Shown in pieces: positions 5,301-29,900 of a DNA stretch of 64,000 bases. The stretch is from Macrostomum lignano (Eukaryota). Where the stretch lies: assembly GCA_002269645.1 (NCBI GenBank), contig NIVC01001976.1, positions 62,001 through 126,000 on the forward strand. Reading direction: 5' to 3'. Both the position numbers and the translations under genes were made by a program. The notes beneath the pieces were generated by a model. The model was not told where the DNA came from. It worked only from the letters and a program-made list of their open reading frames with translations, and did not search any database. Position 1 is the stretch's first letter, and each line of letters begins with the position of its first letter.

Positions 5301-8300
5301 ATCGTAGATCCCAGATCGTAGATCCCAGATCGTAGATCCCAGATCGTAGATCCCAGATCGTAGATCCCAGATCGTAGATCCCAGATCGTAGATCCCAGAT
5401 CGTAGATCCCAGATCGTAGATCCCAGATCGTAGATCCCAGATCGTAGATCCCAGATCGTAGATCCCAGATCGTAGATCCCAGATCGTAGATCCCAGATCG
5501 TAGATCCCAGATCGTAGATCCCAGATCGTAGATCCCAGATCGTAGATCCCAGATCGTAGATCCCAGATCGTAGATCCCAGATCGTAGATCCCAGATCGTA
5601 GATCCCAGATCGTAGATCCCAGATCGTAGATCCCAGATCGTAGATCCCAGATCGTAGATCCCAGATCGTAGATCCCAGATCGTAGATCCCAGATCGTAGA
5701 TCCCAGATCGTAGATCCCAGATCGTAGATCCCAGATCGTAGATCCCAGATCGTAGATCCCAGATCGTAGATCCCAGATCGTAGATCCCAGATCGTAGATC
5801 CCAGATCGTAGATCCCAGATCGTAGATCCCAGATCGTAGATCCCAGATCGTAGATCCCAGATCGTAGATCCCAGATCGTAGATCCCAGATCGTAGATCCC
5901 AGATCGTAGATCCCAGATCGTAGATCCCAGATCGTAGATCCCAGATCGTAGATCCCAGATCGTAGATCCCAGATCGTAGATCCCAGATCGTAGATCCCAG
6001 ATCGTAGATCCCAGATCGTAGATCCCAGATCGTAGATCCCAGATCGTAGATCCCAGATCGTAGATCCCTGATCCCAGATCCTTGATTCCAGAACAGATCT
6101 CATATCGTAGATCTGAGAGACCATATATCAGTTAGTTAGGATCTGTACATCCGGTGCCACGTAATCTACTTATTTTTATTTAAATTCACTGCGCTCTGTA
6201 TACATTCGAATTTCATAGTGCCTATGTATGCTGTATCTCTAATTACCCTAGGTAATCAACCTGATCAACGTGGCCCAGGAGAACAGCAACCCGACGGTGG
6301 CCGCGGCCCTTGACAGGGTGCTGGAGATCCTGCATCAGTCTACTGATCTGTACACTGGCGAGCTGCCCAGCACCCAGGAGGACAAGATGACCTCAGATTA
6401 CGTTGGGGGCCTCATGACGGTGAGGTTTTCCTAGCTAAAAATACAAAAAAGTTCAAACTACTATACTGTGAGTAGAAATATGGACATTTTTGCTAACTTA
6501 CGAGTATTTGTAAAAAATATTTTATTTCCTAGGGCGGATCGAAGCCTCCGGAGAAAAAGCGACAAGTGATGTTGCAGCCGAGGCGTAAGTATTTTGTTAA
6601 AATCGATATTTCTTTATTTTTTTAGTGCATTCAGTTTAAAAAATCGTGTTTTCCTAGAAAGCGCACACCTCTTTATATAAGCATGCCTTAGTGTTTATAG
6701 TTTTACTTTATTTTCATATTCTATACTATCTATTATTTATCTTAAGCTTTATTAGAATCTTGTTTGCCTGTCTCTGGCATTATTTATTTCTATTTGTTTT
6801 AATTATGCCCACCAGGCTTTAAAACAGTAGGAGCTTTGACGTGATTTCCTTTTCTTGATTTTATGTTTCGTTTTTAACACAAAATATTCCAGGAATGCAC
6901 CAAAGGCCGTCAGAAATCATGTCTGAGCATATTAACCAACTGCTAGGTCTGCTGCCATATTTTTATTTTTTTACGTCTTGATTGATTGGTTGAGCTTGAC
7001 AGCTTGCCGTGCTGATTATGCAGAGTTTTGCGCTTGTTTGTCTTGTTTATAAATAACTAATAATGCACCTACCAGCCTTGAAAATCAGTTTGCTGTGTTG
7101 CATCTCTTATATTTACCCGCTAACACAGTTCTGGCGTGTCAGTAGTCACTTGTGTTCATTGATGCTTATTTTATTTATTGCAATAATTCCCGATGTTACT
7201 GTGACTGGCGTGCCCAGCTTGTAGTTGGGTAAATCTCAAAGAATATTTTATCCTGGATCCCAGATTCCTAATCCCAAATACTAAATCCTAGATCCTGGAT
7301 CCCAGATCCCAGATCCTACATCCCAGATCCCAGATCCCAGATCCCAGATCCTACATTCCAGACCCCAGATCCTAGATTACAGGTCCTACATCCCAGATCC
7401 CATATCCTAGATCCAAGATCCCATATCCTAGGTCCCAGATCCAAGATCCCATATCCTAGGTCCCAGATCCAAGATCCCATATCCTAGGTCCCAGATCCAA
7501 GATCCCATATCCTAGGTCCCAGATCCAAGATCCAAACTACCAGATCCCAGATTCTAGATCCCAGATCCCATATCCTATATCCCAGATCCCAAGTCCTAGA
7601 TCTCAGATCATAGATCCCAAATCAAAGATCTCAGATCATAGATCCCTATTCCCAAATCCTAGATCTCAGATCATAGATCCCTATTCCCAAATCCTAGATC
7701 TCAGATCATAGATCCCTGTTCCCAAATCCTAGATCTCAGATCATAGATCCCAAATCCTAGATCTCAGATCATAGATCCCAAATCCTAGATCTCAGATCAT
7801 AGATCCCAAATCCTAGATCTCAGATCATAGATCCCAAATCCTAGATCTCAGATCATAGATCCCAAATCCTAGATCTCAGATCATAGATCCCAAATCCTAG
7901 ATCTCAGATCATAGATCCCAAATCCTAGATCTCAGATCATAGATCCCAAATCCTAGATCTCAGATCATAGATCCCAAATCCTAGATCTCAGATCATAGAT
8001 CCCAAATCCTAGATCTCAGATCATAGATCCCAAATCCTAGATCTCAGATCATAGATCCCAAATCCTAGATCTCAGATCATAGATCCCAAATCCTAGATCT
8101 CAGATCATAGATCCCAAATCCTAGATCTCAGATCATAGATCCCAAATCCTAGATCTCAGATCATAGATCCCAAATCCTAGATCTCAGATCATAGATCCCA
8201 AATCCTAGATCTCAGATCATAGATCCCAAATCCTAGATCTCAGATCATAGATCCCAAATCCTAGATCTCAGATCATAGATCCCAAATCCTAGATCTCAGA

Positions 8301-11300
8301 TCATAGATCCCAAATCCTAGATCTCAGATCATAGATCCCAAATCCTAGATCTCAGATCATAGATCCCAAATCCTAGATCTCAGATCATAGATCCCAAATC
8401 CTAGATCTCAGATCATAGATCCCTGTTCCCAAATCATAGATCTCAGATCATAGATCCCTGTTCCCAAATCCTTAATGCTAGATCCCAGATCCCAAATCCC
8501 AAATTCTAGATCCCAGATCCCAGATCCTACATGATTTTGGCGTTTCCCTAGTTTAAAAAATGGGTCATCACAGTTTAGATCAAGAAATTACCTGCTCCCC
8601 TAATTGTTGGAAGGAATCCCATGTGATGGGATTGCAATAAAGATAATACCTTGAATCGGCGCTAGCAACTTAATTCAAAATTGAAAGCAAAACTTTCCCT
8701 TTTAATTACCAAGCTCACTGTTTGTGGTTCATTAAGTTAATTTTCTCATATTTAATGGCGCATTGTACTGCAGCTGCAGTCCTGTTTTTAGACAGATTTT
8801 TCTCTGATTAATTTTTTATTTTACTTCATCTTTCAAGAAAGGGAGCTACTGTCTTAATCAGTTCCTTTCAAGTAGCATGGAGAAGTGTTTATCATAAATT
8901 TAATAATCAAGGATTAAATTCGTGCCCGAATAGCGCGAACCACCAGAGGTTAAGCAAAACCGATTTTGGTTAGTATAAAATGTATCCAGTAAAAAAATAG
9001 TTAGCTTTTTGTCAGCTTTTGTCCTGTACTGTACTGTTATTTTGCGGCCCATGTGCAGTGTCTTGAAATGTCGCCTTTGTAGATTGTTTATAGCTGGGAC
9101 TTATAGTGGGCATTTGAAGTGTGACAATATGAAATTCTTAGTGACAACCTAATAGTGATAATCTGAGAGTGACATTTTAAGAAACGAATGGAGCACTCTG
9201 GAGTATCACTCTTAAATTTTCACTCTTAGAATGTCACTCTCAGATTTTCACTCTTAGAATGTCACTCTCAGATTGTCACTCTTAGAATGTCACTCTCAGA
9301 TTGTCACTCTTATAATGTCACTCCTGTTGTCACTTCAAAGAGTGAAAATCTGAGAGCAACATTCCATTAGAGTGACAATCTGAGAGCGACATTGCATTAG
9401 GGTGACATTCTAAGAGTGACTATCTGAGAGCGACATTTCATTAGGGTGACATTCTAAGAGTGACAATCTGAGAGTGACAATCTGAGAGTGACATTCTAAG
9501 AGTGACAATCTGAGAGCGACATTTCATTAGGGTGACATTCTAAGAGTGACAATCTGAGAGCGACATTTCATTAGAGTGACATTCTGAGAGTGAAATTCTT
9601 AGAGTGACAATCTGAAAACGACATTCTAAGAGTGACAATCTGAGAGTGACATTCTAAGAGTGACAATCTGAGAGTGAAACTTTTAGAGTGACAATCTAGA
9701 GTGACATTCTAAGAGTGACAATCTGAGAGTGACATTCTAAGAGTGACATTCCATTAGAGTGATATTCAAAGGGTGAAAATACAAGAGTGACAATCTGAGA
9801 GTGATACTCCAGCAGTGACAATCTTGGGAAAATTTGTCATTTCATAGAGTTGTAAACAAGCAAATTATTCCAAGCTGATTTCAAGTAAAACGCTGACTCT
9901 AAAACTCCAAAATGTCTAACAAGCCGGCCTCACTGACCCATCCGATTCTCTCAGAGAACTCCTCAAGCAACATACAGTCGCTCAGCGAGATTCCCGAGGA
10001 GCTGCTGGCCTATTTAGACAACGATGACGATTGGAGCTTCGACATCATCGAGCTGGAACGAGTGACAGAGAAGAAGCCCATGGTGTACTTGGCGATGAAG
10101 ACACTGCAGCGGTTCAACGTGTGCCACTTCCTTCAGTGCAGCGAGGACACCATGCTGAAGTGGCTGCAGGTCATCCAGGACCATTACCACGCCGACAACT
10201 GCTATCACAATGCCACCCACGGTGCCGATGTAATGCAGAGTTCGGCCTATTTCCTAGAACGAGATCGGATTAAATCGATCTTCGACGAAATGGACGAAGT
10301 CGCCTCGCTGCTGGGCGCCCTGGTGCACGATCTGGATCATCCGGGCAGGACGAATCCGTTTCTGATCAACAGCCAGCATAAGCTGGCCATTCTGTACAAT
10401 GATATGTGAGTTTTGAATGCCAGAGACGATATGTATCGAAATTAATATTAATAGGAACAGCCGATATGTATCGAAAGTTAATTAAGTATCGTAGAAGTTA
10501 AGTAAATCAATATTGAATGCAAGTAGCCGATAGGTATCGAAAGTAATAATAATATGGCCGACATGCATCGAAAGTCAATATTAATTTAAATAGCCGATAT
10601 GTATCGAAAATCAATATTAATTTAAATAGCCGATATGTATCGAAAATCAATATTAATTTAAATAGCCGATATGTATCGAAAGTAATATTAATAAAAAAGC
10701 TAATATCTATGGAAACCAATATTATTATGAATAACCGATATGTATCGAAAATAATGTTAACAAAATAGCCGATATGTTTAAAAATTTATATTTACACAAG
10801 ATTCATTTAACCCTAACTGTTTTTCGCCAGCACGGTGCTGGAGAGCCACCACGTGTCGCTGGCCTTCCAGCTGACCACTCGCGACGATCGCATCAACATA
10901 TTCAAGAACATGAGCCGCGAGGACTACAAAACCCTGCGCCAGAGCATGATTGACATTGTCCTGGCAACTGAGATGGCCAAACATTTTGAGCACGTGGGTA
11001 AATTCGCTAATCAGATTGTCGCCCCGCTGGTTGCCAAGGAGGGCGAGGAGGGTGCTGAAAGAATCACGGAAGAGGAGGCGCTCGAGATGTTGACTAAATC
11101 GGAGAATCGAACGCTAATAAAGCGAGTTTTAATCAAATGCTCAGACGTGAGCAATCCCTGCCGATCGCTGAAACTTTGCAAAGAATGGGCAAAACGCATA
11201 TCAGAAGAATACTTTCAGCAGGCAAGTTTTTGCGAACATTTGCAGTTTGTCTACTGTTGGTAGCAAATCAGCTATTAATGTAACCGAATTAGCAGATTAG

Positions 11301-12284
11301 CCGATATGTATCGAAAATGCCTATAGTAAATAGGAAAATAAACAAAGGAACTATTTTTTCCTACAGACGGACGAGGAAAAGTCCAAGGGTCTGCCAATTG
11401 TGATGCCTGTGTTTGACCGCACCACCTGCAACATGCCGCACTCGCAGACCAGCTTTATTGATTTCTTTTTGCGCGAGATGTTCAGCGCTTGGCACGGTAA
11501 GCGCAATCACTTATCTGAGTTCGTTAGCAATTGTTCTCAAACTAGTAGTAGTAGGCAATTTTACCCTAATCCACAGAAATCATCAACCATCCCATGATCC
11601 CAAAAATCCCTAAATTAGTCCCAAAATCAACTCATGATCCCAAATTAGTCCTCAATTATCCCATGATCCCAAAATCCCAGAATGACTAAAATAATTCCCA
11701 GATCCAAAAATCCCCATATTAGCCTTAAAAATCCCCAAATTAGTCCGAAAATTATCCCCAGGTCTCAAAATACTCAAATTATTTTTACAAATATCCCACG
11801 ATCTAGAAAATCACCAAATTGGTCCTCAATCACCCCATGATCCCGAGAAACCCAAAATTAGTCCCAAAAATAATCCCAAGATCCCAAAAATTCCAAAATG
11901 CATCCTAAAATAATCCTATGAACTTGAAAATCCCTAAATTAGTCCCAAATAATAACATGATCCCAGAAATCCCTAAATAAATTTTAAAACGATCCAATGA
12001 TACTGAAATTCCCAAAATTAGTTCCAAAATTATCCCTTTATCCCAAAAATCCCTCTTTCCTTAAACTGGATTTCTAACCCAATCTCCGGAATTTTCCCCT
12101 AACAACAATCGCTGCAGCATTCTGCGACGTGCCCCAGCTAGTTGAGAACCTGAACAACAACTACGCCTATTGGAAGCAGCTGGCCGATGAGAACAAACGA
12201 GCGGAAGAGGCGATGCGGGAAGCGGCTGAAAGCGAGGAAGAGGCAGCGGCGGCGGAATCAGCGGACGAAGAACGGACCGCGTGA
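2397..12284 (+). CDS. PDE8: cAMP-specific phosphodiesterase 8 (PAS + catalytic domain), 5'-incomplete
   Basis: Phase-consistent exons: 2397-2534 ([13 protein letters not shown]), 2614-2702 (EWDG..), 3055-3164 (KVQHFV), 4832-4920 (VTIEAPIHK), 6252-6419 ([19 protein letters not shown]), 6533-6584, optional 6893-6946, 9955-10405 ([20 protein letters not shown]), 10831-11221 ([16 protein letters not shown]), 11367-11496 (TDEEK..VMPVFDR), 12118-12284 (stop). Motifs match remembered PDE8A/B sequences. Upstream REC-domain exons were not located. Confidence 0.96.
2750..3020. repeat. 41-bp intronic tandem repeat (cagtgtacactgagccgatccatagctttacttctctgccc), ~6.5 copies
   Basis: Direct reading; inside a PDE8 intron. 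Confidence 0.92.
3270..3345 (+). pseudogene. tRNA-derived element (SINE head or tRNA pseudogene)
   Basis: A box TAGCGTAGCGG (3277-3287) and B box GGTTCGATTCC (3320-3330) at tRNA-like spacing; acceptor, anticodon and T stems do not pair. Confidence 0.5.
3840..4428. repeat. 23-bp minisatellite (agaatcagagatagggtggcgct), ~25 copies
   Basis: Direct reading. Confidence 0.96.
4941..6066. repeat. 14-bp near-perfect array (agatcccagatcgt), ~80 copies
   Basis: Direct reading; produces the spurious 409-aa minus-strand ORF. Confidence 0.98.
7255..8525. repeat. AGATCCC-derived array: degenerate 7-mers flanking a 28-bp core (agatcccaaatcctagatctcagatcat)
   Basis: Direct reading. Confidence 0.95.
9130..9825. 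repeat. Degenerate agagtgacaatctg/agagtgacattcta repeat with an internally inverted block
   Basis: Units are forward at 9130-9200 and 9340-9825, and reverse-complement (tcactcttagaatgtcactctcag) at about 9205-9335. Confidence 0.85.
10425..10780. repeat. ~36-bp AT-rich repeat built on ccgatatgtatcgaa
   Basis: About 9 degenerate copies filling a PDE8 intron. Confidence 0.88.
11590..12060. repeat. Degenerate atcccaaaat/aaattagtcc repeat
   Basis: Recurring motifs in the last PDE8 intron. Confidence 0.7.
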
Positions 12285-14842: not shown

Positions 14843-15984
14843 CATTCGTTGGGGCGTCAGAAGTGATATTTAATGCAGTATAGTAGTATAAATAGCGCTT
14901 TTCGATATATTTTATTTCGTACATGTGTCATATTTTAAACAATGCGCACTTATATTTGCAAAAATATATATTTGCCACAAAACAGTATACGAGTCGATAT
15001 ATTCTGATTGGAAGACATAATTTTATCCACTGCTTCAAAACGATTTTATGATTCAAAAGTATTATCCCTGGGTTGGTTACTGATTGATTAACTATTAATT
15101 ACAAATAACAAGGATCAATAGTAAATAAAAAATATATATTAGCGTTGGATGTTGGAGTTCACTCCTTAGACTGCAGGTTTGTTGCACTTTGGATATAATT
15201 TAGCATTAATTGATCAAAAACGAAGTGTGAAGTGGCTGTTTTTACTTTATTTTATTTTATTTAAACACGACTGAATATAAAAATACATTGTGGCAGCTGC
15301 TAAAAATATAAAAATACTGCACTGATTTTTAGTAATTTAAACTTTTTTAAATGTAAGTGCTTAATTTCAAGAGAAGTTCGACAAATACATAAAGGTTAAA
15401 ATCGAAAATTTATTTTTTCCCGATATGTATCGAAGTATACAAAAGTAGTTGTAAAAATACCTAGAATTTGTGAAAAACTTTCTGGTCAATAGAAGACATT
15501 GTTGACTTATTGAGTGACTGATTTATGGCTACATGTCAGTTGACTCTAAGGTGCAACGGGGCTCTACCATGCACTTAGCAGGGGTGTTGCAGGGGACAGG
15601 GGGCATCTCAATACTTTGTCCCCCACCCAACCTAAACTAATTATGAACCGTTATGGAAATCAACAATTTTGGCTTCGGGGCACCAGAATCTATGGCGCCT
15701 TCTGCGCTAAAATGAGTGCCAGTGGCGCCAAAAATGACGGCTAAAAAACCGAAACTCACATAATGTAGGACTTCAGTCTAGTAGCATGAGGACATTAAGA
15801 CATGCATGTAACCAAGCAGAAACAAATAAAAATGCGAACACACTTGTTTGAGTCTGCTACAGTATGTTAATACCCGAGCGTTATATAATTAACGCTCCCA
15901 ATAAATACATGTACATCTTACGAGCGTAAGCCATAATTATTAACGTACGTAGCGTACATATGAAGGTTGCAAGACAGAGAGACA

Positions 15985-15998
15985 AGACATGCAGACAC

Positions 15999-16037
<39 letters not shown>

Positions 16038-16068
16038 AACACACGGACAGACACTAAGACAGACACTA

Positions 16069-16101
<33 letters not shown>

Positions 16102-16104
16102 CTA

Positions 16105-16169
<65 letters not shown>

Positions 16170-16172
16170 CTA

Positions 16173-16237
<65 letters not shown>

Positions 16238-16334
16238 CTAAGACAGACAGACAGACAAGACAGACAGACAGACAAGACAGACAGACAGACAAACACACGG
16301 ACAGACACTAAGACAGACACTAAGACAGACACTA

Positions 16335-16375
<41 letters not shown>

Positions 16376-16412
16376 CTAAGACAGACAGACAGACAAGACA
16401 GACAGACAGACA

Positions 16413-16457
<45 letters not shown>

Positions 16458-16477
16458 CTAAGACAGACAGACAGACA

Positions 16478-16514
<37 letters not shown>

Positions 16515-16515
16515 G
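15985..16515. repeat. (ACAG)n microsatellite with cactaag interruptions
   Basis: Direct reading. Confidence 0.97.
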
Positions 16516-16989: not shown

Positions 16990-19900
16990 ATGACTGTTGA
17001 GCGTCTGCAATGCGTCGCGAAAGCTGATGGTCAGAAGCTGCTGTTTCTGCTGCTTTTGCTGACTGTTGCTGCCAGACTGCCGGGGCGGACCGCCGCCTAT
17101 GCTGGAATTGCCGGTTCAGGAAAATTGTCGGTGAGTGAGGACTGGGTGAGGCTGAGTGAGGGCTGGGTGAGGCTGAGTGAGGACTGGGTGAGGCTGAGTG
17201 AGGACTGGGTGAGGCTGAGTGAGGGCTGGGTGAGGCTGAGTGAGGACTGGGTGAGGCTGAGTGAGGACTGGGTGAGGCTGAGTGAGGCTGAGTGAGGCTG
17301 AGTGAGGACTGGGTGAGGCTGAATGAGGCTGAGTGAGGCTGAGTGAGGCTGAGTGAGGCTGAGTGAGGCTGAGTGAGGCTGAGTGAGGCTGAGTGAGGCT
17401 GAGTGAGGCTGAGTGAGGCTGAGTGAGGCTGAGTGAGGCTGAGTGAGGACTGGGTGAGGCTGAGTGAGGGCTGGGTGAGGCTGAGTGAGGACTGGGTGAG
17501 GCTGAGTGAGGACTGGGTGAGGCTGAGTGAGGGCTGGGTGAGGCTGAGTGAGGACTGGGTGAGGCTGAGTGAGGACTGGGTGAGGCTGAGTGAGGCTGAG
17601 TGAGGCTGAGTGAGGACTGGGTGAGGCTGAATGAGGCTGAGTGAGGCTGAGTGAGGCTGAGTGAGGCTGAGTGAGGCTGAGTGAGGCTGAGTGAGGCTGA
17701 GTGAGGCTGAGTGAGGCTGAGTGAGGCTGAGTGAGGACTGGGTGAGGCTGAGTGAGGGCTGGGTGAGGCTGAGTGAGACTGGGTGAGGCTGAGTGAGGAC
17801 TGGGTGAGGCTGAGTGAGACTGGGTGAGGCTGAGTGAGGCTGAGTGAGGCTGAGTGAGGACTGGGTGAGGCTGAGTGAGGGCTGGGTGAGGCTGAGTGAG
17901 GACTGGGTGAGGCTGAGTGAGGACTGGGTGAGGCTGAGTGAGACTGGGTGAGGCTGAGTGAGGCTGAGTGAGGCTGAGTGAGGCTGAGTGAGGCTGAGTG
18001 AGGCTGAGTGAGGCTGAGTGAGGCTGAGTGAGGCTGAGTGAGGCTGAGTGAGGACTGGGACTTTAATATCAGTGCAATTGCAGAAGTCATTTCAGACATA
18101 TTCTTCCAATTCTTAGTCAGCATGAAAGCAATGGCAAGCAAAATTTGATAATTGCTTCTGACACGAACAAGAGCAGCAGACTGCAGCCCAGTTGCTGCTC
18201 ACAGCTTATAGCTACTAATATAATTATAGGGCCTATTTCGTGGACTCTCAGCAATTGTCAAGGGCTTGTAAGCTGAAGTGTGAAGCAGGAGCTGCAATTA
18301 AGCTTCCTACGTTTAAGTGAAACTTGACCTGAAGAAGGCGCTCTCGCTAGTTAATCATTTTAACAGCCCCTATTAGTTTGTCACCCTCACGCTTTCAATT
18401 CCGTTAGCCATTCTTGCTTGTAATTTTCTTGTGTGAGAGTTTTTTTTCCAAATTTTTTTGCATCCATGAGATACCATGAGCTTCGTTGCCTTGAAAAATG
18501 CTGAATTCGTGTCTGTTGGTGCTGAATTCGTGTCTGTTGGTGCTGAATTCGTGTCTGTTGGTGCTGAATTCTTGTCTGTTGGTGCTGAATTCTTGTCTGT
18601 TGGTGTTGAATTCTTGTCTGTTGGTGCTGAATTCGTGTCTGTTGGTGCTGAATTCTTGTCTGTTGGTGTTGAATTCTTGTCTGTTGGTGCTGAATTCTTG
18701 TCTGTTGGTGCTGAATTCTTGTCTGTTGGTGTTGAATTCTTGTCTGTTGGTGCTGAATTCGTGTCTGTTGGTGTTGAATTCTTGTCTGTTGGTGCTGAAT
18801 TCGTGTCTGTTGGTGCTGAATTCGTGTCTGTTGGTGTTGAATTCGTGTCTGTTGGTGCTGAATTCGTGTCTGTTGGTGCTGAATTCTTGTCTGTTGGTGT
18901 TGAATTCTTGTCTGTTGGTGCTGAATTCGTGTCTGTTGGTGTTGAATTCTTGTCTGTTGGTGCTGAATTCTTGTCTGTTGGTGTTGAATTCTTGTTTTTT
19001 GGTGTTGAATTCTTGTCTGTTGGTGTTGAATTCTTGTCTGTTGGTGCTGAATTCTTGTCTGTTGGTGTTGAATTCTTGTCTGTTGGTGCTGAATTCTTGT
19101 CTGTTGGTGTTGAATTCTTGTTTTTTGGTGTTGAATTCTTGTCTGTTGGTGCTGAATTCTTGTCTGTTGGTGCTGAATTCTTGTCTGTTGGTGTTGAATT
19201 CTTGTCTGTTGGTGTTGAATTCTTGTCTGTTGGTGCTGAATTCGTGTCTGTTGGTGCTGAATTCTTGTCTGTTGGTGTTGAATTCTTGTCTGTTGGTGCT
19301 GAATTCTTGTCTGTTGGTGCTGAATTCTTGTCTGTTGGTGTTGAATTCTTGTCTGTTGGTGCTGAATTCGTGTCTGTTGGTGTTGAATTCGTGTCTGTTG
19401 GTGCTGAATTCGTGTCTGTTGGTGTTGAATTCGTGTCTGTTGGTGCTGAATTCGTGTCTGTTGGTGCTGAATTCTTGTCTGTTGGTGTTGAATTCTTGTC
19501 TGTTGGTGCTGAATTCTTGTCTGTTGGTGCTGAATTCGTGTCTGTTGGTGCTGAATTCTTGTCTGTTGGTGTTGAATTCTTGTCTGTTGGTGCTGAATTC
19601 TTGTCTGTTGGTGTTGAATTCTTGTCTGTTGGTGCTGAATTCTTGTCTGTTGGTGCTGAATTCGTGTCTGTTGGTGTTGAATTCTTGTCTGTTGGTGCTG
19701 AATTCGTGTCTGTTGGTGTTGAATTCTTGTCTGTTGGTGCTGAATTCTTGTCTGTTGGTGCTGAATTCGTGTCTGTTGGTGTTGAATTCTTGTCTGTTGG
19801 TGCTGAATTCGTGTCTGTTGGTGTTGAATTCTTGTCTGTTGGTGCTGAATTCTTGTCTGTTGGCGCTGAATTCTTGTCTGTTGGTGCTGAATTCTTGTCT

Positions 19901-22463
19901 GTTGGTGTTGAATTCTTGTCTGTTGGTGCTGAATTCTTGTCTGTTGGTGCTGAATTCTTGTCTGTTGGTGTTGAATTCTTGTCTGTTGGCGCTGAATTCT
20001 TGTCTGTTGGTGCTGAATTCTTGTCTGTTGGTGCTGAATTCTTGTCTGTTGGTGTTGAATTCTTGTCTGTTGGTGTTGAATTCTTGTCTGTTGGTGCTGA
20101 ATTCTTGTCTGTTGGTGTTGAATTCTTGTCTGTTGGTGTTGAATTCTTGTCTGTTGGTGCTGAATTCGTGTCTGTTGGTGCTGAATTCTTGTCTGTTGGT
20201 GCTGAATTCGTGTCTGTTGGTGCTGAATTCTTGTCTGTTGGTGCTGAATTCGTGTCTGTTGGTGCTGAATTCGTGTCTAAGCTGCTTGCTGGATGTCGGA
20301 CGCTGCATGGACGCTCGCGACCCATCCACCCCAGATGGAAAAATTCTGTCTACGGCCACCGACATGCAAGACTTCCAACAACAAATCCAACACCTGCACC
20401 ACCACTCTCAATTTGACTCAACCCCCCACCCCGCAGTGTGAAGGCGAGGGAGCGGTCTGCTTCACCCAGGCCGCCTGCTGTGAGAACTACAGCTGTTTGC
20501 GAGCTAGCCAGGGTGAGTCTGACAAATATTTATACACTGACGTAACCCGCACAGGCAACGAACCTGTTCGGTTCTCAGGATCCCGTGCGGTCTCGGGATC
20601 TGATGCTTGCGCACTGGATCGATAAATACAATTATAACTGGCGAGATGTTGTTTCAAATTTTCCTTTTGAGGCTAAAATAAAGTGGCGCCAAATCTCATA
20701 GAAATGGCGTCAAATATCAGGTAAAATGGCGCCAAATCTTACGTAAAGTGGCGCCAAATCTCAGGTAAAGTGGAGCCAAATCTCAGATAAACTGGCGCCA
20801 AATTTCGAATAAAGTGACGCTAAATCTCAGGTAAAGTGGCGCCAAATCTCAAGTAAAGTGGCGCCAAATCTCAAGTAAAGTGGCGCCAAATCTCGAATAA
20901 AGTGACGCTAAATCTCAGTTAAAGTGGCGCCAAATTTCGAATAAAGTGGCGCCAAATCTCAAGTAAAGTGGCGCCAAATCTCGAATAAAGTGGCGCTAAA
21001 TCTCAGTTAAAGTGGCGCCAAATCTCAGGTGAAATGGCGCCAAATCTCAGGTAAAGTGGAGCTAAATCTCAGATTAAAGTGGCCAAATGTTTTAGTTACA
21101 GATTCTCGATCACAGCCCCATAACCAGCACTCCTAGAGATCCAGTTAGAACTTGTTCTTCAATTATCAATTTTCGACCTGTCAGTCCAAGTAACAATGGG
21201 CGTGGCTGTTATGGTAAGCCAAATATTTGCTGAAGGAACAGTTTGCAATGCGAATTTCCATATCTCAATATGTCATTCTCTGGGCAAGGTAAAGCGAGTC
21301 ATTGTGTCTTCAGTACGTGTAGAAAATTATTTGCACAAAATCAAGTACACCGGAGGTTGGACCTGAGTCTGATTTTCTTCTGTTAGCTATTAGGCTACAT
21401 ATATTGCTTCAGGTGAGACAAAAAGGTCTCAAACGCAATTGGAATGTTGGTTGTTGTCTTTCATCCCAGTAAAGATATGTGGGCTAAGTTAGGGATGCAC
21501 TATTGGGAGAGAGAATAGAGTAGACACAGAGAGTAGACAGAGAGTAGACACAGAGAGTAGACAGAGAGTAGACACAGAGAGTAGACACAGAGAGTAGACA
21601 CTAAGAGTAGACACTGAGAATAGACACTGAGAGTAGACACTAAGAGTAGACACTGAGAATAGACACTGAGAGTAGACACAGAGAGTAGACACAGAGATTA
21701 GACACAGAGAGTAGACACAGGGAGTAGACACAGGGAGTAGACACAGAGAGTAGACACAGGGAGTAGACACAGAGAATAGGCACAGGGAGTAGACACAGAG
21801 AGTAGACACAGAGAGTAGACACAGGGAGTAGACACAGGGAGTAGACACAGAGAATAGGCACAGAGAATAGGCACAGAGAGTAGACACAGAGAGTAGACAC
21901 AGAGAGTAGACACAGGGAGTAGACACAGAGAATAGGCACAGGGAGTAGACACAGAGAGTAGACACAGAGAGTAGACACAGGGAGTAGACACAGGGAGTAG
22001 ACACTGAGAGTAGACACTGAGAGTAGACACAGAGAGTAGACACAGAGAGTAGACACAGGGAGTAGACACAGAGAGTAGACACAGAGAGTAGACACTGAGA
22101 ATAGACACTGAGAGTAGACACTGAGAGTGGACACTAAGAGTAGACACTGAGGACACTGAGAGTATCTGCATCCCATCTCCCTCAGCCTCCTACGGCCGCT
22201 GCGCCCCCAACCAGGCAGACATGCGGCTGGCCGAGGACGCGGCCCTGACTGACTCGGCAGACGACAGCAGCGGCGCTTTCAGCTGTTCGAGCGACTCTGA
22301 CTGCCCATCCGGTCAGTGCTGCAAAGCTTCGACATCGTCGCCTGTGCCAATCGGCGGGCGGATGTCGTGCGGAAACTGCGAACGTCAGAGCCGACTTTTG
22401 GAGAGCCTGTTTGAGCAATACTACAGCGCGTTCAAGCGGAGCGGCAAAGGTGAAGACAATTAA
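16990..22463 (+). CDS. Secreted cysteine-rich precursor with two C-C-CC-C-C (knottin-like) modules, ~164 aa
   Basis: Exons 16990-17130 (signal core LLFLLLLLTVAA, donor GTGAGT), 20437-20512 (CEGEGAVCFTQAACCENYSC, donor GTGAGT) and 22186-22463 (ASYGRC..CSSDSDCPSGQCC..CGNC..FKRSGKGEDN*). Phases 0 and 1 match and total length is 495 nt. AATAAA lies ~75 nt after the stop. Confidence 0.78.
17131..18055. repeat. 10/11-bp GTGAG-containing repeat (gagtgaggct / gggtgaggact)
   Basis: Starts exactly at the exon-1 donor of the knottin gene. Confidence 0.96.
18498..20277. repeat. 21-bp minisatellite (gaattcttgtctgttggtgct), ~85 copies
   Basis: Direct reading; one EcoRI site per unit; source of four ~650-aa repeat ORFs. 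Confidence 0.98.
20680..21085. repeat. ~22-bp repeat (aaagtggcgccaaatctcaggt)
   Basis: About 17 degenerate copies. Confidence 0.9.
21505..22160. repeat. 13-bp repeat (gagagtagacaca)
   Basis: Direct reading; ends ~25 nt before the 22186 acceptor. Confidence 0.95.
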
Positions 22464-24930: not shown

Positions 24931-25269
24931 CATATCAACTTAAAAGCCAAAAATATCCCCAATTTAAATCCGCCAAGCCTTCAAACTAAAGCAAATGCAT
25001 ACATATTATGAGCGCAAGTCAATAAAAAGAAAGCGAGCTCTCAATTATATTGTTTAGCAAAATTGCCAGCCAGCCTTGAAAAAAGACAACCTTCAAAAAA
25101 GGACATTCTCAAAATGCAACCAAATGTGTATATTATATATAGCCAAATATTGCTAAACTGTTGTAAATGAGATGAGAGGGATGAGAGGAGACGTGAGGAG
25201 CAAAGTGAGAACGGAGACTAAGAGAATCGGGTACAGTGCATTGAAGAATAAAAAGAGCACGAAAGTCAA

Positions 25270-25460
25270 CAAAAACGAAGAAAAATGCGCACAAAAAGGC
25301 AGGAAAAACGAAGAAAAATGCGCACAAAAAGGCAGGAAAAACGAAGAAAAATGCGCACAAAAAGGCAGGAAAAACGAAGAAAAATGCGCACAAAAAGGCA
25401 GGAAAAACGAAGAAAAATGCGCACAAAAAGGCAGGAAAAAACGAAGAAAAATGCGCAAAA
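25270..25460. repeat. 33-bp repeat (aaaacgaagaaaaatgcgcacaaaaaggcagga), ~5.5 copies
   Basis: Direct reading. Confidence 0.92.
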
Positions 25461-25547
25461 ATGGGCAACAAGAAACAGAGAAAACACTAGGTAACATATT
25501 TTTACCGCAAAGAACCAAAAAGTCAGACTTTAATGACCAAAAGTGCG

Positions 25548-25987
25548 TCACTGAAACAAAAACGAAGCATCAGATGTGGCGGCCGGTTCCGCAGTCGTTT
25601 CAGATTCGCGCAGAGCCGCCAGAATCTCCTGCTGGCGTACGCGGAGCGGAGCCAGGATATTGGCCAGTTCCAGCTCCTCAGCCTCGAGCAGATCATCGAG
25701 CTCAGTTGTGTTCAGCTCCGTGTAATCGAATTCTAAATCCGATTCTTCTCCTGCGGTGCCGCCCTCTGCTGCGGCTGAAATTGTCGGTTTTGATTGGGGT
25801 AGATCACCCGTACTGTCACTCTCTGCCATTTGTCACTCACTCTCCCTCATCTGTACCATTCCCTTACGTCTGTTACTCTCTCACATCTATGTATGTATGT
25901 ATGTATGTATGTATGTATGTATGTATGTATGTATGTATGTATGTATGTATCTATCTGTCGATCTATCTCTATCTATCTATCTATCTG

Positions 25988-26034
<47 letters not shown>

Positions 26035-26039
26035 GTCTG

Positions 26040-26070
<31 letters not shown>

Positions 26071-26071
26071 G

Positions 26072-26114
<43 letters not shown>

Positions 26115-26139
26115 GTCTATCTATCTATCTATCTGTCTG

Positions 26140-26170
<31 letters not shown>

Positions 26171-26175
26171 GTCTG

Positions 26176-26246
<71 letters not shown>

Positions 26247-26275
26247 GTCTATCTATCTATCTATCTATCTATCTG

Positions 26276-26318
<43 letters not shown>

Positions 26319-26343
26319 GTCTATCTATCTATCTATCTGTCTG

Positions 26344-26394
<51 letters not shown>

Positions 26395-26399
26395 GTCTG

Positions 26400-26434
<35 letters not shown>

Positions 26435-26435
26435 G

Positions 26436-26490
<55 letters not shown>

Positions 26491-26495
26491 GTCTG

Positions 26496-26526
<31 letters not shown>

Positions 26527-26527
26527 G

Positions 26528-26558
<31 letters not shown>

Positions 26559-26579
26559 GTCTATCTATCTATCTGTCTG

Positions 26580-26618
<39 letters not shown>

Positions 26619-26619
26619 G

Positions 26620-26678
<59 letters not shown>

Positions 26679-26683
26679 GTCTG

Positions 26684-26730
<47 letters not shown>

Positions 26731-26735
26731 GTCTG

Positions 26736-26786
<51 letters not shown>

Positions 26787-26819
26787 GTCTGTCTATCTAT
26801 CTATCTATCTATCTATCTG

Positions 26820-26870
<51 letters not shown>

Positions 26871-26899
26871 GTCTATCTATCTATCTATCTATCTGTCTG

Positions 26900-26934
<35 letters not shown>

Positions 26935-29900
26935 GTCTGTCTATCTATCTATCTATCTATCTATCTGTCTGTCTATCTATCTATCTATCTATCTATCTGT
27001 CTGTCTATCTATCTATTTCAGACCCTGTCCCTCACTATATCTGTCTGTCACTCTCTAGTTGTCCCTCACTATTCCCCATTTGTCACTGTCTCCGCAGTTG
27101 GAGCCAATCTACAGGTAAGTACAGCCTATTTAAGGTTAACTACCTGATTCACCGTTTCCACCCGTGTCCATCTGAGCGCCTCCAGCCTCAGCAGCAGCCT
27201 CAGCAGCAGCCTCGTCACCGCAGGCTGTCAGCAGCTGCTCTTCATCAAGTGTTTGTTCAGCAATCTCCAATCGAGTCAGCAGGGCGGCAAGCTCGGCCTT
27301 GGTTGAGTCTTCGTCCTCGTCTTGTTCGAGCTGCGCAAGCTCTCTGGGTGACAGGTGGTTTAAATTGCTTACTGGTTAAGTTTGAGTGTGTTAGACACTA
27401 GATGTTAGGGTGTTAGAGAGGCTGGGTGCTAGATGTTACACACTGTGTTAGACACTAGATGTTAGGGTGTTAGAGAGGCTGGGTGCTAGATGTTACACAC
27501 TGTGTTAGACACTGGATGTTAGGGTGTTAAAGAGGTTGGGTGCTAGATGTTACACACTGTGTTAGACACTAGATGTTAGGGTGTTAGAGAGGCTGGGTGC
27601 TAGATGTTACACACTGTGTTAGACACTGGATGTTAGGGTGTTAGAGAGGCTGGGTGCTAGATGTTACACACTGTGTTAGACACTAGATGTTAGGGTGTTA
27701 GAGAGGCTGGGTGCTAGATGTTACACACTGTGTTAGACACTGGATGTTAGGGTGTTAAAGAGGTTGGGTGCTAGATGTTACACACTGTGTTAGACACTAG
27801 ATGTTAGGGTGTTAGAGAGGCTGGGTGCTAGATGTTACACACTGTGTTAGACACTGGATGTTAGGGTGTTAGAGAGGCTGGGTGCTAGATGTTACACACT
27901 GTGTTAGACACTAGATGTTAGGGTGTTAGAGAGGCTGGGTGCTAGATGTTACACACTGTGTTAGACACTGGATGTTAGGGTGTTAGAGAGGCTGGGTGCT
28001 AGATGTTACACACTGTGTTAGACACTAGATGTTAGGGTGTTAGAGAGGCTGGGTGCTAGATGTTACACACTGTGTTAGACACTGGATGTTAGGGTGTTAG
28101 CGAGGCTGGGTGCTAGATGTTACACACTGTGTTAGACACTAGATGTTAGGGTGTTAGAGAGGCTGGGTGCTAGATGTTACACACTGTGTTAGACACTAGA
28201 TGTTAGGGTGTTAGAGAGGCTGGGTGCTAGATGTTACACACTGTGTTAGACACTGGATGTTAGGGTGTTAAAGAGGTTGGGTGCTAGATGTTACACACTG
28301 TGTTAGACACTAGATGTTAGGGTGTTAGAGAGGCTGGGTGCTAGATGTTACACACTGTGTTAGACACTGGATGTTAGGGTGTTAGAGAGGCTGGGTGCTA
28401 GATGTTACACACTGTGTTAGACACTGGATGTTAGGGTGTTAGAGAGGCTGGGTGCTAGATGTTACACACTGTGTTAGACACCGGATATTAAGGTGTTAGA
28501 TTGGGTTTTAAGGTATTAGAGACTGGGTATAACATGAATAAGGCAGTCAATCTGAGGGCCAACCAAAAGTACTATAAAAGAGAATGCGGTCAACACACCC
28601 AACATCCTTAAGAGCAGACTCGGCCTCCTGAATCATCTGATCTAGCTCAGCCTCACTGAGCTCGGCGAACTGCTCACAGAGCTCGCCATCGTCATCGCTC
28701 TGATTATCCACCTCATCGGCAGAAGTCGCAGCCTCGGCAGCAGCAGCCTCTTCTGGCAAATATGAGTCGTCAGGATTGAAATCCTCACGGTCCTGCAATA
28801 TTCAAAATAAATTAAATTAAAAATTAAAAAGCACCCAATGAGTTCATTTTAAGAAGTTAAACCAAACACTAAGACTATGGATTGGGCTGTAGCCCAGCAA
28901 CTGAGGATCTGGGAGGCTGGCCCAGCAACTGAGGATCTGGGAGGCTGGCCAAGCCACTCATGAGGATCTGGGAGGCTGGCCCAGCAACTGACACTCTGGG
29001 AGGCTGGCCCAGCAACTGAGGATCTGGGAGGCTGGCCCACCAACTGGGGATCTGGGAGGCTGGCCCATCAACTGGGGATCTGGGAGGCTGGCCCAGCAAC
29101 TGAGTATCTGGGAGGCTGGCCAAGCCACTCATGAGGATCTGGGAGGCTGGCCCAGCAACTGACACTCTGGGAGGCTGGCCCAGCAACTGAGGATCTGGGA
29201 GGCTGGCCCACCAACTGGGGATCTGGGAGGCTGGCCCATCAACTGGGGATCTGGGAGGCTGGCCCATCTACTGAGGATCTGGGAGGCTGGCACAGCAACT
29301 GAGGATCTGGGAGGCTGGTGGCCCAGCAACTGAGGATCTGGGAGGCTGGTGGCCCAGCAACTGAGGATCTGGGAGGCTGGTGGCCCAGCAACTGAGGATC
29401 TGGGAGGCTGGCCCAGCAACTGACACTCTGGGAGGCTGGTGGCCCAGCAACTGACACTCTGGGAGGCTGGTGGCCCAGCAACTGAGGATCTGGGAGGCTG
29501 GTGGCCCAGCAACTGAGGATCTGGGAGGCTAGCTCAGCAACTGGGGAGGCGCTGAGATGAGATCTATTGGAAACATACTTCATACTTACAACATATAGCA
29601 TACTTCATCAGCTACAAACTCAGCACAGTGCCCATCTCACCGCAGCCTCTCGCAGATCTCTAATTTCCTGCTCAAGCTCCGCAATCTCAGCCTCCTTAGC
29701 CGATATTCGAGTTAAAAACTCGGCTTCATCTTCCCCGACAGAGCCGGAGTCATCGCTTAGCAGAGCAGCTTCTCCATCTGACTCATCAACAGCATCGCTG
29801 GCCTCCTCCTGATCAACCTCGGATTCTTCTGCCGTTGCCGCCTTCTGCTGCAGCTCCTGCTGAACCTGAAGCTGTCGCTGCAGCTCGGCCATCTTAGTTC

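Follow-up and report, generated by a model that had tools for sequence, protein, structure and literature searches.

What kind of secreted protein does the gene BOX15_Mlig015013 of the flatworm Macrostomum lignano encode, and to which family, if any, does it belong? The gene lies in a 64-kb stretch of the contig NIVC01001976.1, which we term the window, and its 164-residue product joins a signal-type N-terminus to two modules of six cysteines each. We present evidence that this gene (copy g2 or g3) is likely to code for a divergent, 12-Cys short form of the protostome precursor family variously called prohormone-3, ITG-like or space blanket (spab). An original prediction made from the DNA sequence had named the ITG-like/prohormone-3 family as one candidate among several, and it is this candidate that profile comparison and a shared intron now back.

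Scripted splicing of the window exactly reproduced the exons, coordinates and splicing model put forward in that prediction, i.e. a three-exon gene on the forward strand at 16990-22463, which gives a 495-nt coding sequence (CDS) for 164 amino acids. By exact look-up, the spliced product is letter-for-letter identical to PAA62070.1 and PAA92554.1 in GenBank, which are labelled hypothetical protein BOX15_Mlig015013g3/g2 (UniProt A0A267H4D4). The GenBank gene on NIVC01001976.1 spans precisely 16990-22463 of the window, and the locus equals the window base for base over 6990-32463. The gene, which had been thought to look unannotated, is hence functionally unnamed rather than unannotated. For the annotation of the assembly, the sole source was transcripts assembled from RNA-seq data, with TransDecoder open reading frames (ORFs) (PMC5730564), and the presence of an identical transcript-derived CDS in GenBank therefore lends indirect support to the predicted splicing of the three exons.

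The N-terminus of the product consists of an n-region (M1-K16) and a hydrophobic core (L17-A28, LLFLLLLLTVAA). Module 1 has its cysteines at positions 48, 55, 61, 62, 67 and 78 (C-x6-C-x5-CC-x4-C-x10-C) and is followed by a linker of 27 residues (79-105), six of them acidic and one basic. The cysteines of module 2 occupy positions 106, 112, 117, 118, 134 and 137 (C-x5-C-x4-CC-x15-C-x2-C), and the C-terminal tail reads RLLESLFEQYYSAF-KR-SGKGEDN, with a dibasic site at K156-R157. Thus, the secreted-type precursor with two cysteine modules, an acidic spacer and a KR tail that had been foreseen is present in full in the 164-residue product, and the module described there as the first knot is indeed split by an intron, as had also been anticipated. 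Each module is predicted to hold three disulfides.

Probable relationship to the prohormone-3 family

Prohormone-3 has been equated with the ITG-like prohormone in published work, and the NCBI names for orthologues of the Tenebrio ITG-like protein comprise 'prohormone-3', 'ITG-like peptide' and 'space blanket'. The family is viewed as an ancient group of protostome neuropeptide precursors (PMC3890597, PMC6425005), with 16 conserved cysteines, just 12 of which are shared by the oyster and scallop members (PMC8398477). These 16 cysteines are distributed over three modules (6 + 4 + 6), as against the 12 in two modules of the flatworm protein. Our comparisons employed the precursor sequences of the Tenebrio ITG-like protein (PMC9552230) and of the prohormone-3 proteins of Platynereis (PMC3890597) and Urechis (PMC7737342); the Tenebrio protein, used as a database query, recovered 222 relatives, 22 of which were aligned for an arthropod profile.

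When 1.84 billion representative proteins were searched exhaustively with the window protein by phmmer, five matches were returned, all from M. lignano, which together with the members of their clusters form five paralogue groups of two to three near-identical copies each. The paralogues of Mlig015013 bear the gene IDs Mlig022787, Mlig030832, Mlig031025/019154 and Mlig005172. Identity to the window protein goes down to 28-44%, with all 12 cysteines invariant; G42, G52, G76, D111, P113 and Y152 are likewise invariant across the five groups. An LFxQYYS-like C-terminal motif is also kept, and basic residues come after it: one group has a single R there, and the other four have KR, RKR, RR or RKKR. 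When the proteins were mapped exactly onto the spliced genes, the same two introns emerged in all the paralogues, one of phase 0 before Cys1 and the other of phase 1 between Cys5 and Cys6. The retention of the 12 cysteines and both introns at this level of divergence argues that the gene is functional. Among the paralogues, UniProt has automatically assigned the names 'ITG-like peptide', 'Ixodegrin' and 'Prokineticin domain-containing', which we used as leads and then tested.

In hhalign comparisons, whose E-values are those of single comparisons, the flatworm family matched the two annelid prohormone-3 proteins at a probability of 91% (E 9.5e-7), Platynereis alone at 83% (E 8.6e-6), and the annelids and arthropods combined at 82% (E 1.1e-5), the last over 85 collinear columns that cover both modules. 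The actual scores, 41.3 and 45.5, stand against 13 +/- 3 (maximum 23) for 150 column shuffles and 24.3 and 13.6 for reversed alignments, while shuffles that preserve the cysteine framework yielded 22 +/- 4 (maximum 35), with none of the 100 reaching the real score. As the real scores top all of these controls, the likeness to prohormone-3 goes beyond composition or cysteine spacing. A hidden Markov model of annelid prohormone-3 recovered the window protein at a borderline E of 0.0066 (hmmsearch, Z = 60,000).

The exon-intron structure offers a further line of evidence. We mapped exactly the exons of three arthropod prohormone-3 genes, those of Tenebrio, Lepeophtheirus and Apis, and observed that these and the flatworm gene all have a phase-1 intron in module 1, which interrupts the sixth codon past Cys5. 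It falls at CVDVDG/V in Tenebrio, CVDAEE/N in Lepeophtheirus, CMNVDG/D in Apis and CLRASQ/A in the window gene of M. lignano, the slash marking the intron. A phase-0 intron ahead of module 1 is likewise common to all four genes. With some 31 codons in the module, an exact match of place and phase would be expected by chance roughly once in 90 cases. Given the shared intron and the profile similarity, common ancestry is the most economical explanation for module 1, and the module 1 intron predates the flatworm-arthropod split.

The cysteine frameworks accord with this picture for the first module, where all six cysteines align between the flatworm and prohormone-3 sequences. The family pattern is C-x4..6-C-x5-CC-x4-C-x9..-C; Platynereis and the flatworm protein have one and the same framework (6-5-0-4-10), and the Tenebrio ITG-like protein has 4-5-0-4-9. 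Both sides also display a later module of the form C-x5-C-x4..6-CC-x13..15-C-x..-C. Written in full, the frameworks are 6-5-0-4-10 / 27 / 5-4-0-15-2 for the window protein and 6-5-0-4-24 / 8 / 5-5-10 / 27 / 5-4-0-13-8 for Urechis prohormone-3, and module 2 of the paralogue P0012 has 5-4-0-15-8. By framework, flatworm module 2 corresponds to prohormone-3 module 3, the four-Cys middle module being missing. By local sequence (CxxDxDCPxG), on the other hand, it scores 63% with prohormone-3 module 2 as against 39% with module 3 in hhalign, and MAFFT pairs it with module 2. Prohormone-3 modules 2 and 3 are themselves mutually alike (38%, hhalign).

Outside the modules, prohormone-3 proteins begin with a signal peptide whose removal exposes an aromatic residue (ALG/WS in Platynereis, with the slash here marking cleavage, and an initial W in arthropods), an arrangement that is also predicted for the flatworm protein, and in both a dibasic site close to the C-terminus precedes a short final stretch. 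The flatworm protein differs in having neither a dibasic site before module 1 nor an N-terminal peptide of the WGGLFNRF type, in its LFxQYYS tail, which is specific to the flatworm family, and in its C-terminal SGKGEDN, which is unlike the insect ITG peptides (ITGQGNRIF type). Moreover, prohormone-3 is usually encoded by a single gene, as opposed to the five paralogue groups of M. lignano.

Fold of the modules and competing explanations

The spacing of module 1, C6C5CC4C10C, is that of the inhibitor cystine knot (ICK), as had been proposed; the ICK fold itself is defined by the pairs C1-C4, C2-C5 and C3-C6, the last of which threads the ring. When module 1 was modelled alone (AlphaFold2, with 21 flatworm and arthropod sequences), it attained a predicted local distance difference test score (pLDDT) of 79.6, rising to 88-90 for the core, and the model shows the C-terminal hairpin expected of an ICK. 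Its Foldseek neighbours in the PDB are nearly all ICK peptides, the best having TM-scores of 0.65/0.78 and a root-mean-square deviation of 2.0 A. A precomputed Pfam match to Toxin_12, an ICK family, is on record for several insect prohormone-3 proteins. On the strength of the model, it is plausible that module 1 is an ICK. Like ICK knottins such as the spider Toxin_12-type peptides, conotoxins of framework VI/VII and squash trypsin inhibitors, it has the order C-C-CC-C-C with loops in the ICK range and, in the model, a C-terminal beta-hairpin. It differs from them in lacking a significant E-value in either sequence or Foldseek comparisons: Pfam scans of the window protein and all nine family members gave sub-threshold matches alone (Conotoxin_I2 0.034, WAP 0.015, Toxin_12 0.12), and a sequence search of PDB chains retrieved nothing at E <= 10. 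ICK toxins are, furthermore, made of a propeptide and a single knot, whereas flatworm module 1 sits in a 164-residue, two-module precursor with an acidic product, whose homology lies with a neuropeptide-precursor family and not with the venom families.

The description of the product as a tandem cystine-knot protein is plausible for the first module and unproven for the second. In the full-length AlphaFold model, pLDDT is ~70-74 in module 1 and lower, at 47-70, in the module 2 hairpin, and the last loop of module 2, at two residues, is short for an ICK hairpin. The two flatworm modules are dissimilar (0.5%, hhalign), which gives no support to a tandem knot made by duplicating one unit. The double-knot toxins DkTx and pi-hexatoxin-Hi1a, both among the weak Foldseek matches to the full-length model, likewise have two six-Cys modules per chain; however, the flatworm protein departs from them in the mutual dissimilarity of its modules, its 27-residue acidic linker and the insignificance of these matches.

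We consider it unlikely that the family instead represents secreted, double-domain, cysteine-rich effectors that expanded specifically in Macrostomum, such as toxins, antimicrobial or defence proteins, or products of the adhesive glands or seminal fluid. Such effectors could be either unrelated to prohormone-3 or derivatives of it that were recruited to a non-neural gland and act on other organisms or the mating partner. The occurrence of five groups in one species, with no HMMER relative in another flatworm or animal, is typical of fast-evolving secreted effectors, and the ICK-like fold modelled for module 1 would suit such a role. There is also a precedent in the spider Argiope bruennichi, whose venom is rich in prohormone-3-like proteins and whose venom gland expresses them strongly (PMC7407881). 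Nevertheless, prohormone-3 ancestry is indicated by an intron that agrees in place and phase, by profile similarity along collinear columns and by a conserved dibasic site at the C-terminus, a literature search did not find the gene IDs in any gland-specific, seminal-fluid or adhesion study, and the mature protein would be acidic (pI ~4.4), unlike the mostly cationic antimicrobial peptides. A different proposal takes its cue from module 2, which would then be the functional domain of a signalling protein of the Dickkopf/prokineticin/astakine type, with a colipase fold; we regard this as very improbable. Like the Dickkopf, colipase, prokineticin and astakine proteins, module 2 opens with C-x5-C-x4-CC and D-x-D-C-P-x-G, and to that extent the prokineticin- or Dkk-like start noted in the original prediction stands. 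Six of the nine family members have a Dickkopf_N match (E 0.026-0.16), one paralogue was automatically named 'Prokineticin domain-containing' in UniProt, and the C-terminal domains of draxin and of Dkk1/Dkk4 appear among the top Foldseek matches. All the Pfam scores, however, fall under the curated thresholds (Dickkopf_N at best 12.8 bits against a cut-off of 25, and no match to the Prokineticin model), module 2 has six cysteines where the colipase fold has ten and does not display the ten-Cys pattern, and no solved structure was matched by sequence. The draxin and Dkk matches, whose E-values are insignificant and one search for which queried module 1 alone, are therefore read as a general likeness among small disulfide-rich folds.

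That the gene is an artefact of annotation or assembly, or a non-functional copy, is extremely improbable. The assembly of the DV1 line is highly redundant, the introns are filled with repeats, and one database version of the protein (P0002) has a frameshift in its middle. On the other side, the gene model is transcript-derived, and an intact ORF extends over three canonical exons in at least two mapped copies, with a third locus on record for an identical protein; the 12 cysteines and both introns are, as noted above, kept across the paralogues. The assembly has three gene copies (g1-g3), on NIVC01000114.1 (L001), NIVC01001976.1 (the window; L009) and NIVC01000046.1 (L010), with proteins 98-100% identical and introns that differ in length through the copy number of their repeats. 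L001 (g1, protein P0001) is collinear with the window gene, with 6 differences among the 495 coding bases; exon 2 is 100% identical between the two, and intron 1 of L001 measures 2596 nt as against 3306 nt. The L010 copy codes for an identical protein, yet at the DNA level exon 2 alone is identical. This three-copy pattern fits the near-identical duplicated blocks and assembly redundancy described for the DV1 line (PMC5730564).

The assignment to prohormone-3 has to be set against several observations that weigh against it. The flatworm family scored poorly with the arthropod members, at 3.6% (E 0.012) for Tenebrio alone and 46.5% (E 2e-4) for the 22 arthropods, and the similarity to prohormone-3 is concentrated in module 1, module 2 aligning weakly and about equally with prohormone-3 modules 2 and 3. 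Four of the 16 family cysteines are missing, as are the motifs CCQxxRRxRQ and HTAGEKR-ITGxx, which are invariant in the family; the 12-Cys form is still compatible with membership, since oyster and scallop also share 12 of 16 (PMC8398477). No relatives outside M. lignano were recovered by phmmer, by the family profile (5.8 billion sequences) or by word-indexed searches of large libraries. Such misses in billion-sequence searches are accounted for by the E-value of 0.0066, which is already borderline at proteome scale. AlphaFold modelled the full-length protein poorly (mean pLDDT 54.6), and no Foldseek match is significant (best E 0.16), as is usual for a domain of only ~35 residues. The comparison of the window gene with L001 says little about selection, because non-repeat non-coding divergence is as low as 1.5%; we rejected purifying selection as a conclusion from this pair, CDS divergence being a comparable 1.2%, with a weak deficit in the core alone (one change against five expected, P = 0.04). 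Finally, a literature search by gene ID found no paper that names these genes, nor any expression, peptide or receptor data tied to BOX15_Mlig015013.

Gene structure and genomic surroundings

The coordinates of the gene and of other features of the window are collected in Table 1. Both introns are of the GT..AG type, with GGTGAGT donors and pyrimidine-rich acceptors; GGTGAGT occurs three times in the 64 kb, two of these occurrences being the donors of this gene. Intron 1 is nearly all minisatellite and intron 2 also holds arrays, and the exons appear isolated because the introns are packed with such repeats. A tblastn search of the window with the 164-residue protein found neither a second copy nor an extra module.

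Table 1. Positions of the BOX15_Mlig015013 exons and introns and of other features in the 64-kb window
Feature	Position	Strand	Details
PDE8-like gene	6990-12284	+	Cyclic-nucleotide phosphodiesterase with PAS and PDEase_I; PDEase_I exons 9912-10409 and 10835-11263
(AGAC)n microsatellite	15972-16515		~134 copies; ends ~470 nt 5' of the start codon
Exon 1	16990-17130	+	141 nt; start codon, predicted signal peptide and short N-terminal peptide through S47; phase-0 end directly before Cys1 of module 1
Intron 1	17131-20436	+	3306 nt, phase 0
21/10-mer array	17132-18053		In intron 1
21-mer array	18499-20278		In intron 1
Exon 2	20437-20512	+	76 nt; codes for Cys1-Cys5 of module 1, CEGEGAVCFTQAACCENYSCLRASQ
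Intron 2	20513-22185	+	1673 nt, phase 1, codon 73, between Cys5 and Cys6 of module 1
22-mer array	20679-21083		In intron 2
13-mer array	21517-22151		In intron 2
Exon 3	22186-22463	+	278 nt including the TAA stop; Cys6 of module 1, acidic linker, module 2, LFxQYYS tail, K156-R157, SGKGEDN
AATAAA	22540-22545	+	Starts 77 nt past the last base of the stop codon; putative poly(A) signal
ORF with EF-hand pair	59352-60701	+	449 amino acids; Pfam EF-hand_7, E 1e-9
(CTGT)n array	60704-62018		Directly after the EF-hand ORF

Arthropod prohormone-3 genes have an extra phase-0 intron directly before the fifth cysteine of module 3 (PRK/VC), and that of Apis an additional phase-1 intron between modules 2 and 3; neither is found in the flatworm genes. 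The 21/10-mer minisatellite of intron 1 (TGAGTGAGGC-type) starts at the donor GT and contains dozens of GTGAG donor-like motifs (17131-18053), and the frame of exon 1 stays open for ~52 codons into this array (VSEDWVRLSE... repeats). The minisatellite may supply cryptic 5' splice sites.

Across the 64 kb there are about 40 separate mini- and microsatellite arrays, with periods of 3-258 nt and lengths of up to ~1.9 kb each, which sit in introns and intergenic regions and give rise to many long spurious ORFs on both strands (e.g. 18373-20441 and 25172-27058). The (AGAC)n array upstream of the gene leaves a short unique promoter region of 470 nt before the start codon, which has 99.6% identity in the L001 copy. 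The PDE8-like neighbour also lies ahead of the gene in L001, a copy either paralogous or allelic, and the duplicated block therefore spans both genes. The ORF with the EF-hand pair is probably part of another gene.

Predicted processing and implications

Once the three exons are spliced into one mRNA, for which the transcript-derived CDS gives indirect support, the product would be directed to the secretory pathway by its predicted signal peptide. The putative cleavage site after A36 (TAA/YAG, the slash again marking the cut) obeys the -3/-1 rule and aligns with SEA/YL, AAG/FI, GHG/FI and ADG/FS in the paralogues; removal of the signal peptide here would probably leave Y37 as an aromatic N-terminus, comparable to that of the oyster prohormone-3 peptide seen by mass spectrometry, which starts YLGSG... 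Module 1 would fold into an ICK-like domain with three disulfides, as its spacing, model and fold matches suggest, and module 2 would form another domain with as many disulfides, patterned as CxxDxDC..G..CC like modules 2 and 3 of prohormone-3. Cleavage at K156-R157 by a prohormone convertase, with trimming by a carboxypeptidase, would then yield the heptapeptide SGKGEDN and an acidic mature protein, Y37-F155, of 119 residues (~12.4 kDa, predicted pI ~4.4).

By analogy with insects, oyster and annelids, we posit that this protein would be released to act outside the cell as a signalling ligand, with neurons or neurosecretory cells as its most likely source. In the fly, spab is expressed in 20-25% of midbrain cells, and its knock-down in nociceptors lessens heat nociception in larvae; oyster prohormone-3 is expressed mainly in the visceral ganglia; and prohormone-3 peptides have been detected by mass spectrometry in ant brains, in the nervous tissue of beetles and in the oyster.

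A literature search found no report of the prohormone-3 family from a flatworm. Prior to this work, one paralogue had been automatically labelled 'ITG-like' in UniProt and BOX15_Mlig015013 itself was without a functional name. The new observations are an ancient intron in common with arthropods, a 12-Cys architecture beyond the bivalves and the expansion to five groups. As a more specific proposal, to which we attach low probability and which we offer tentatively, Macrostomum might have retained a stripped-down, two-module prohormone-3, with an ICK-type knot joined to another disulfide domain, and expanded it into five groups.

The gain lies in annotation and comparative neuroendocrinology; the finding is not surprising in kind and overturns nothing. 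A hypothetical protein acquires a family, and a tractable system is suggested for a poorly understood hormone family: prohormone-3/ITG-like/spab is a widely expressed neuropeptide-like precursor of protostomes, with a cysteine-rich product, and its five-fold expansion sits here in an animal amenable to RNA interference and transgenesis. If the more specific proposal above is true, M. lignano could also open the receptor and function of prohormone-3/spab to experiment for the first time. On that same proposal, should the paralogues turn out to be split between neurons and glands, they would represent a neuro-hormone caught in the course of turning into secreted effectors, be they venom-like, defensive or seminal.

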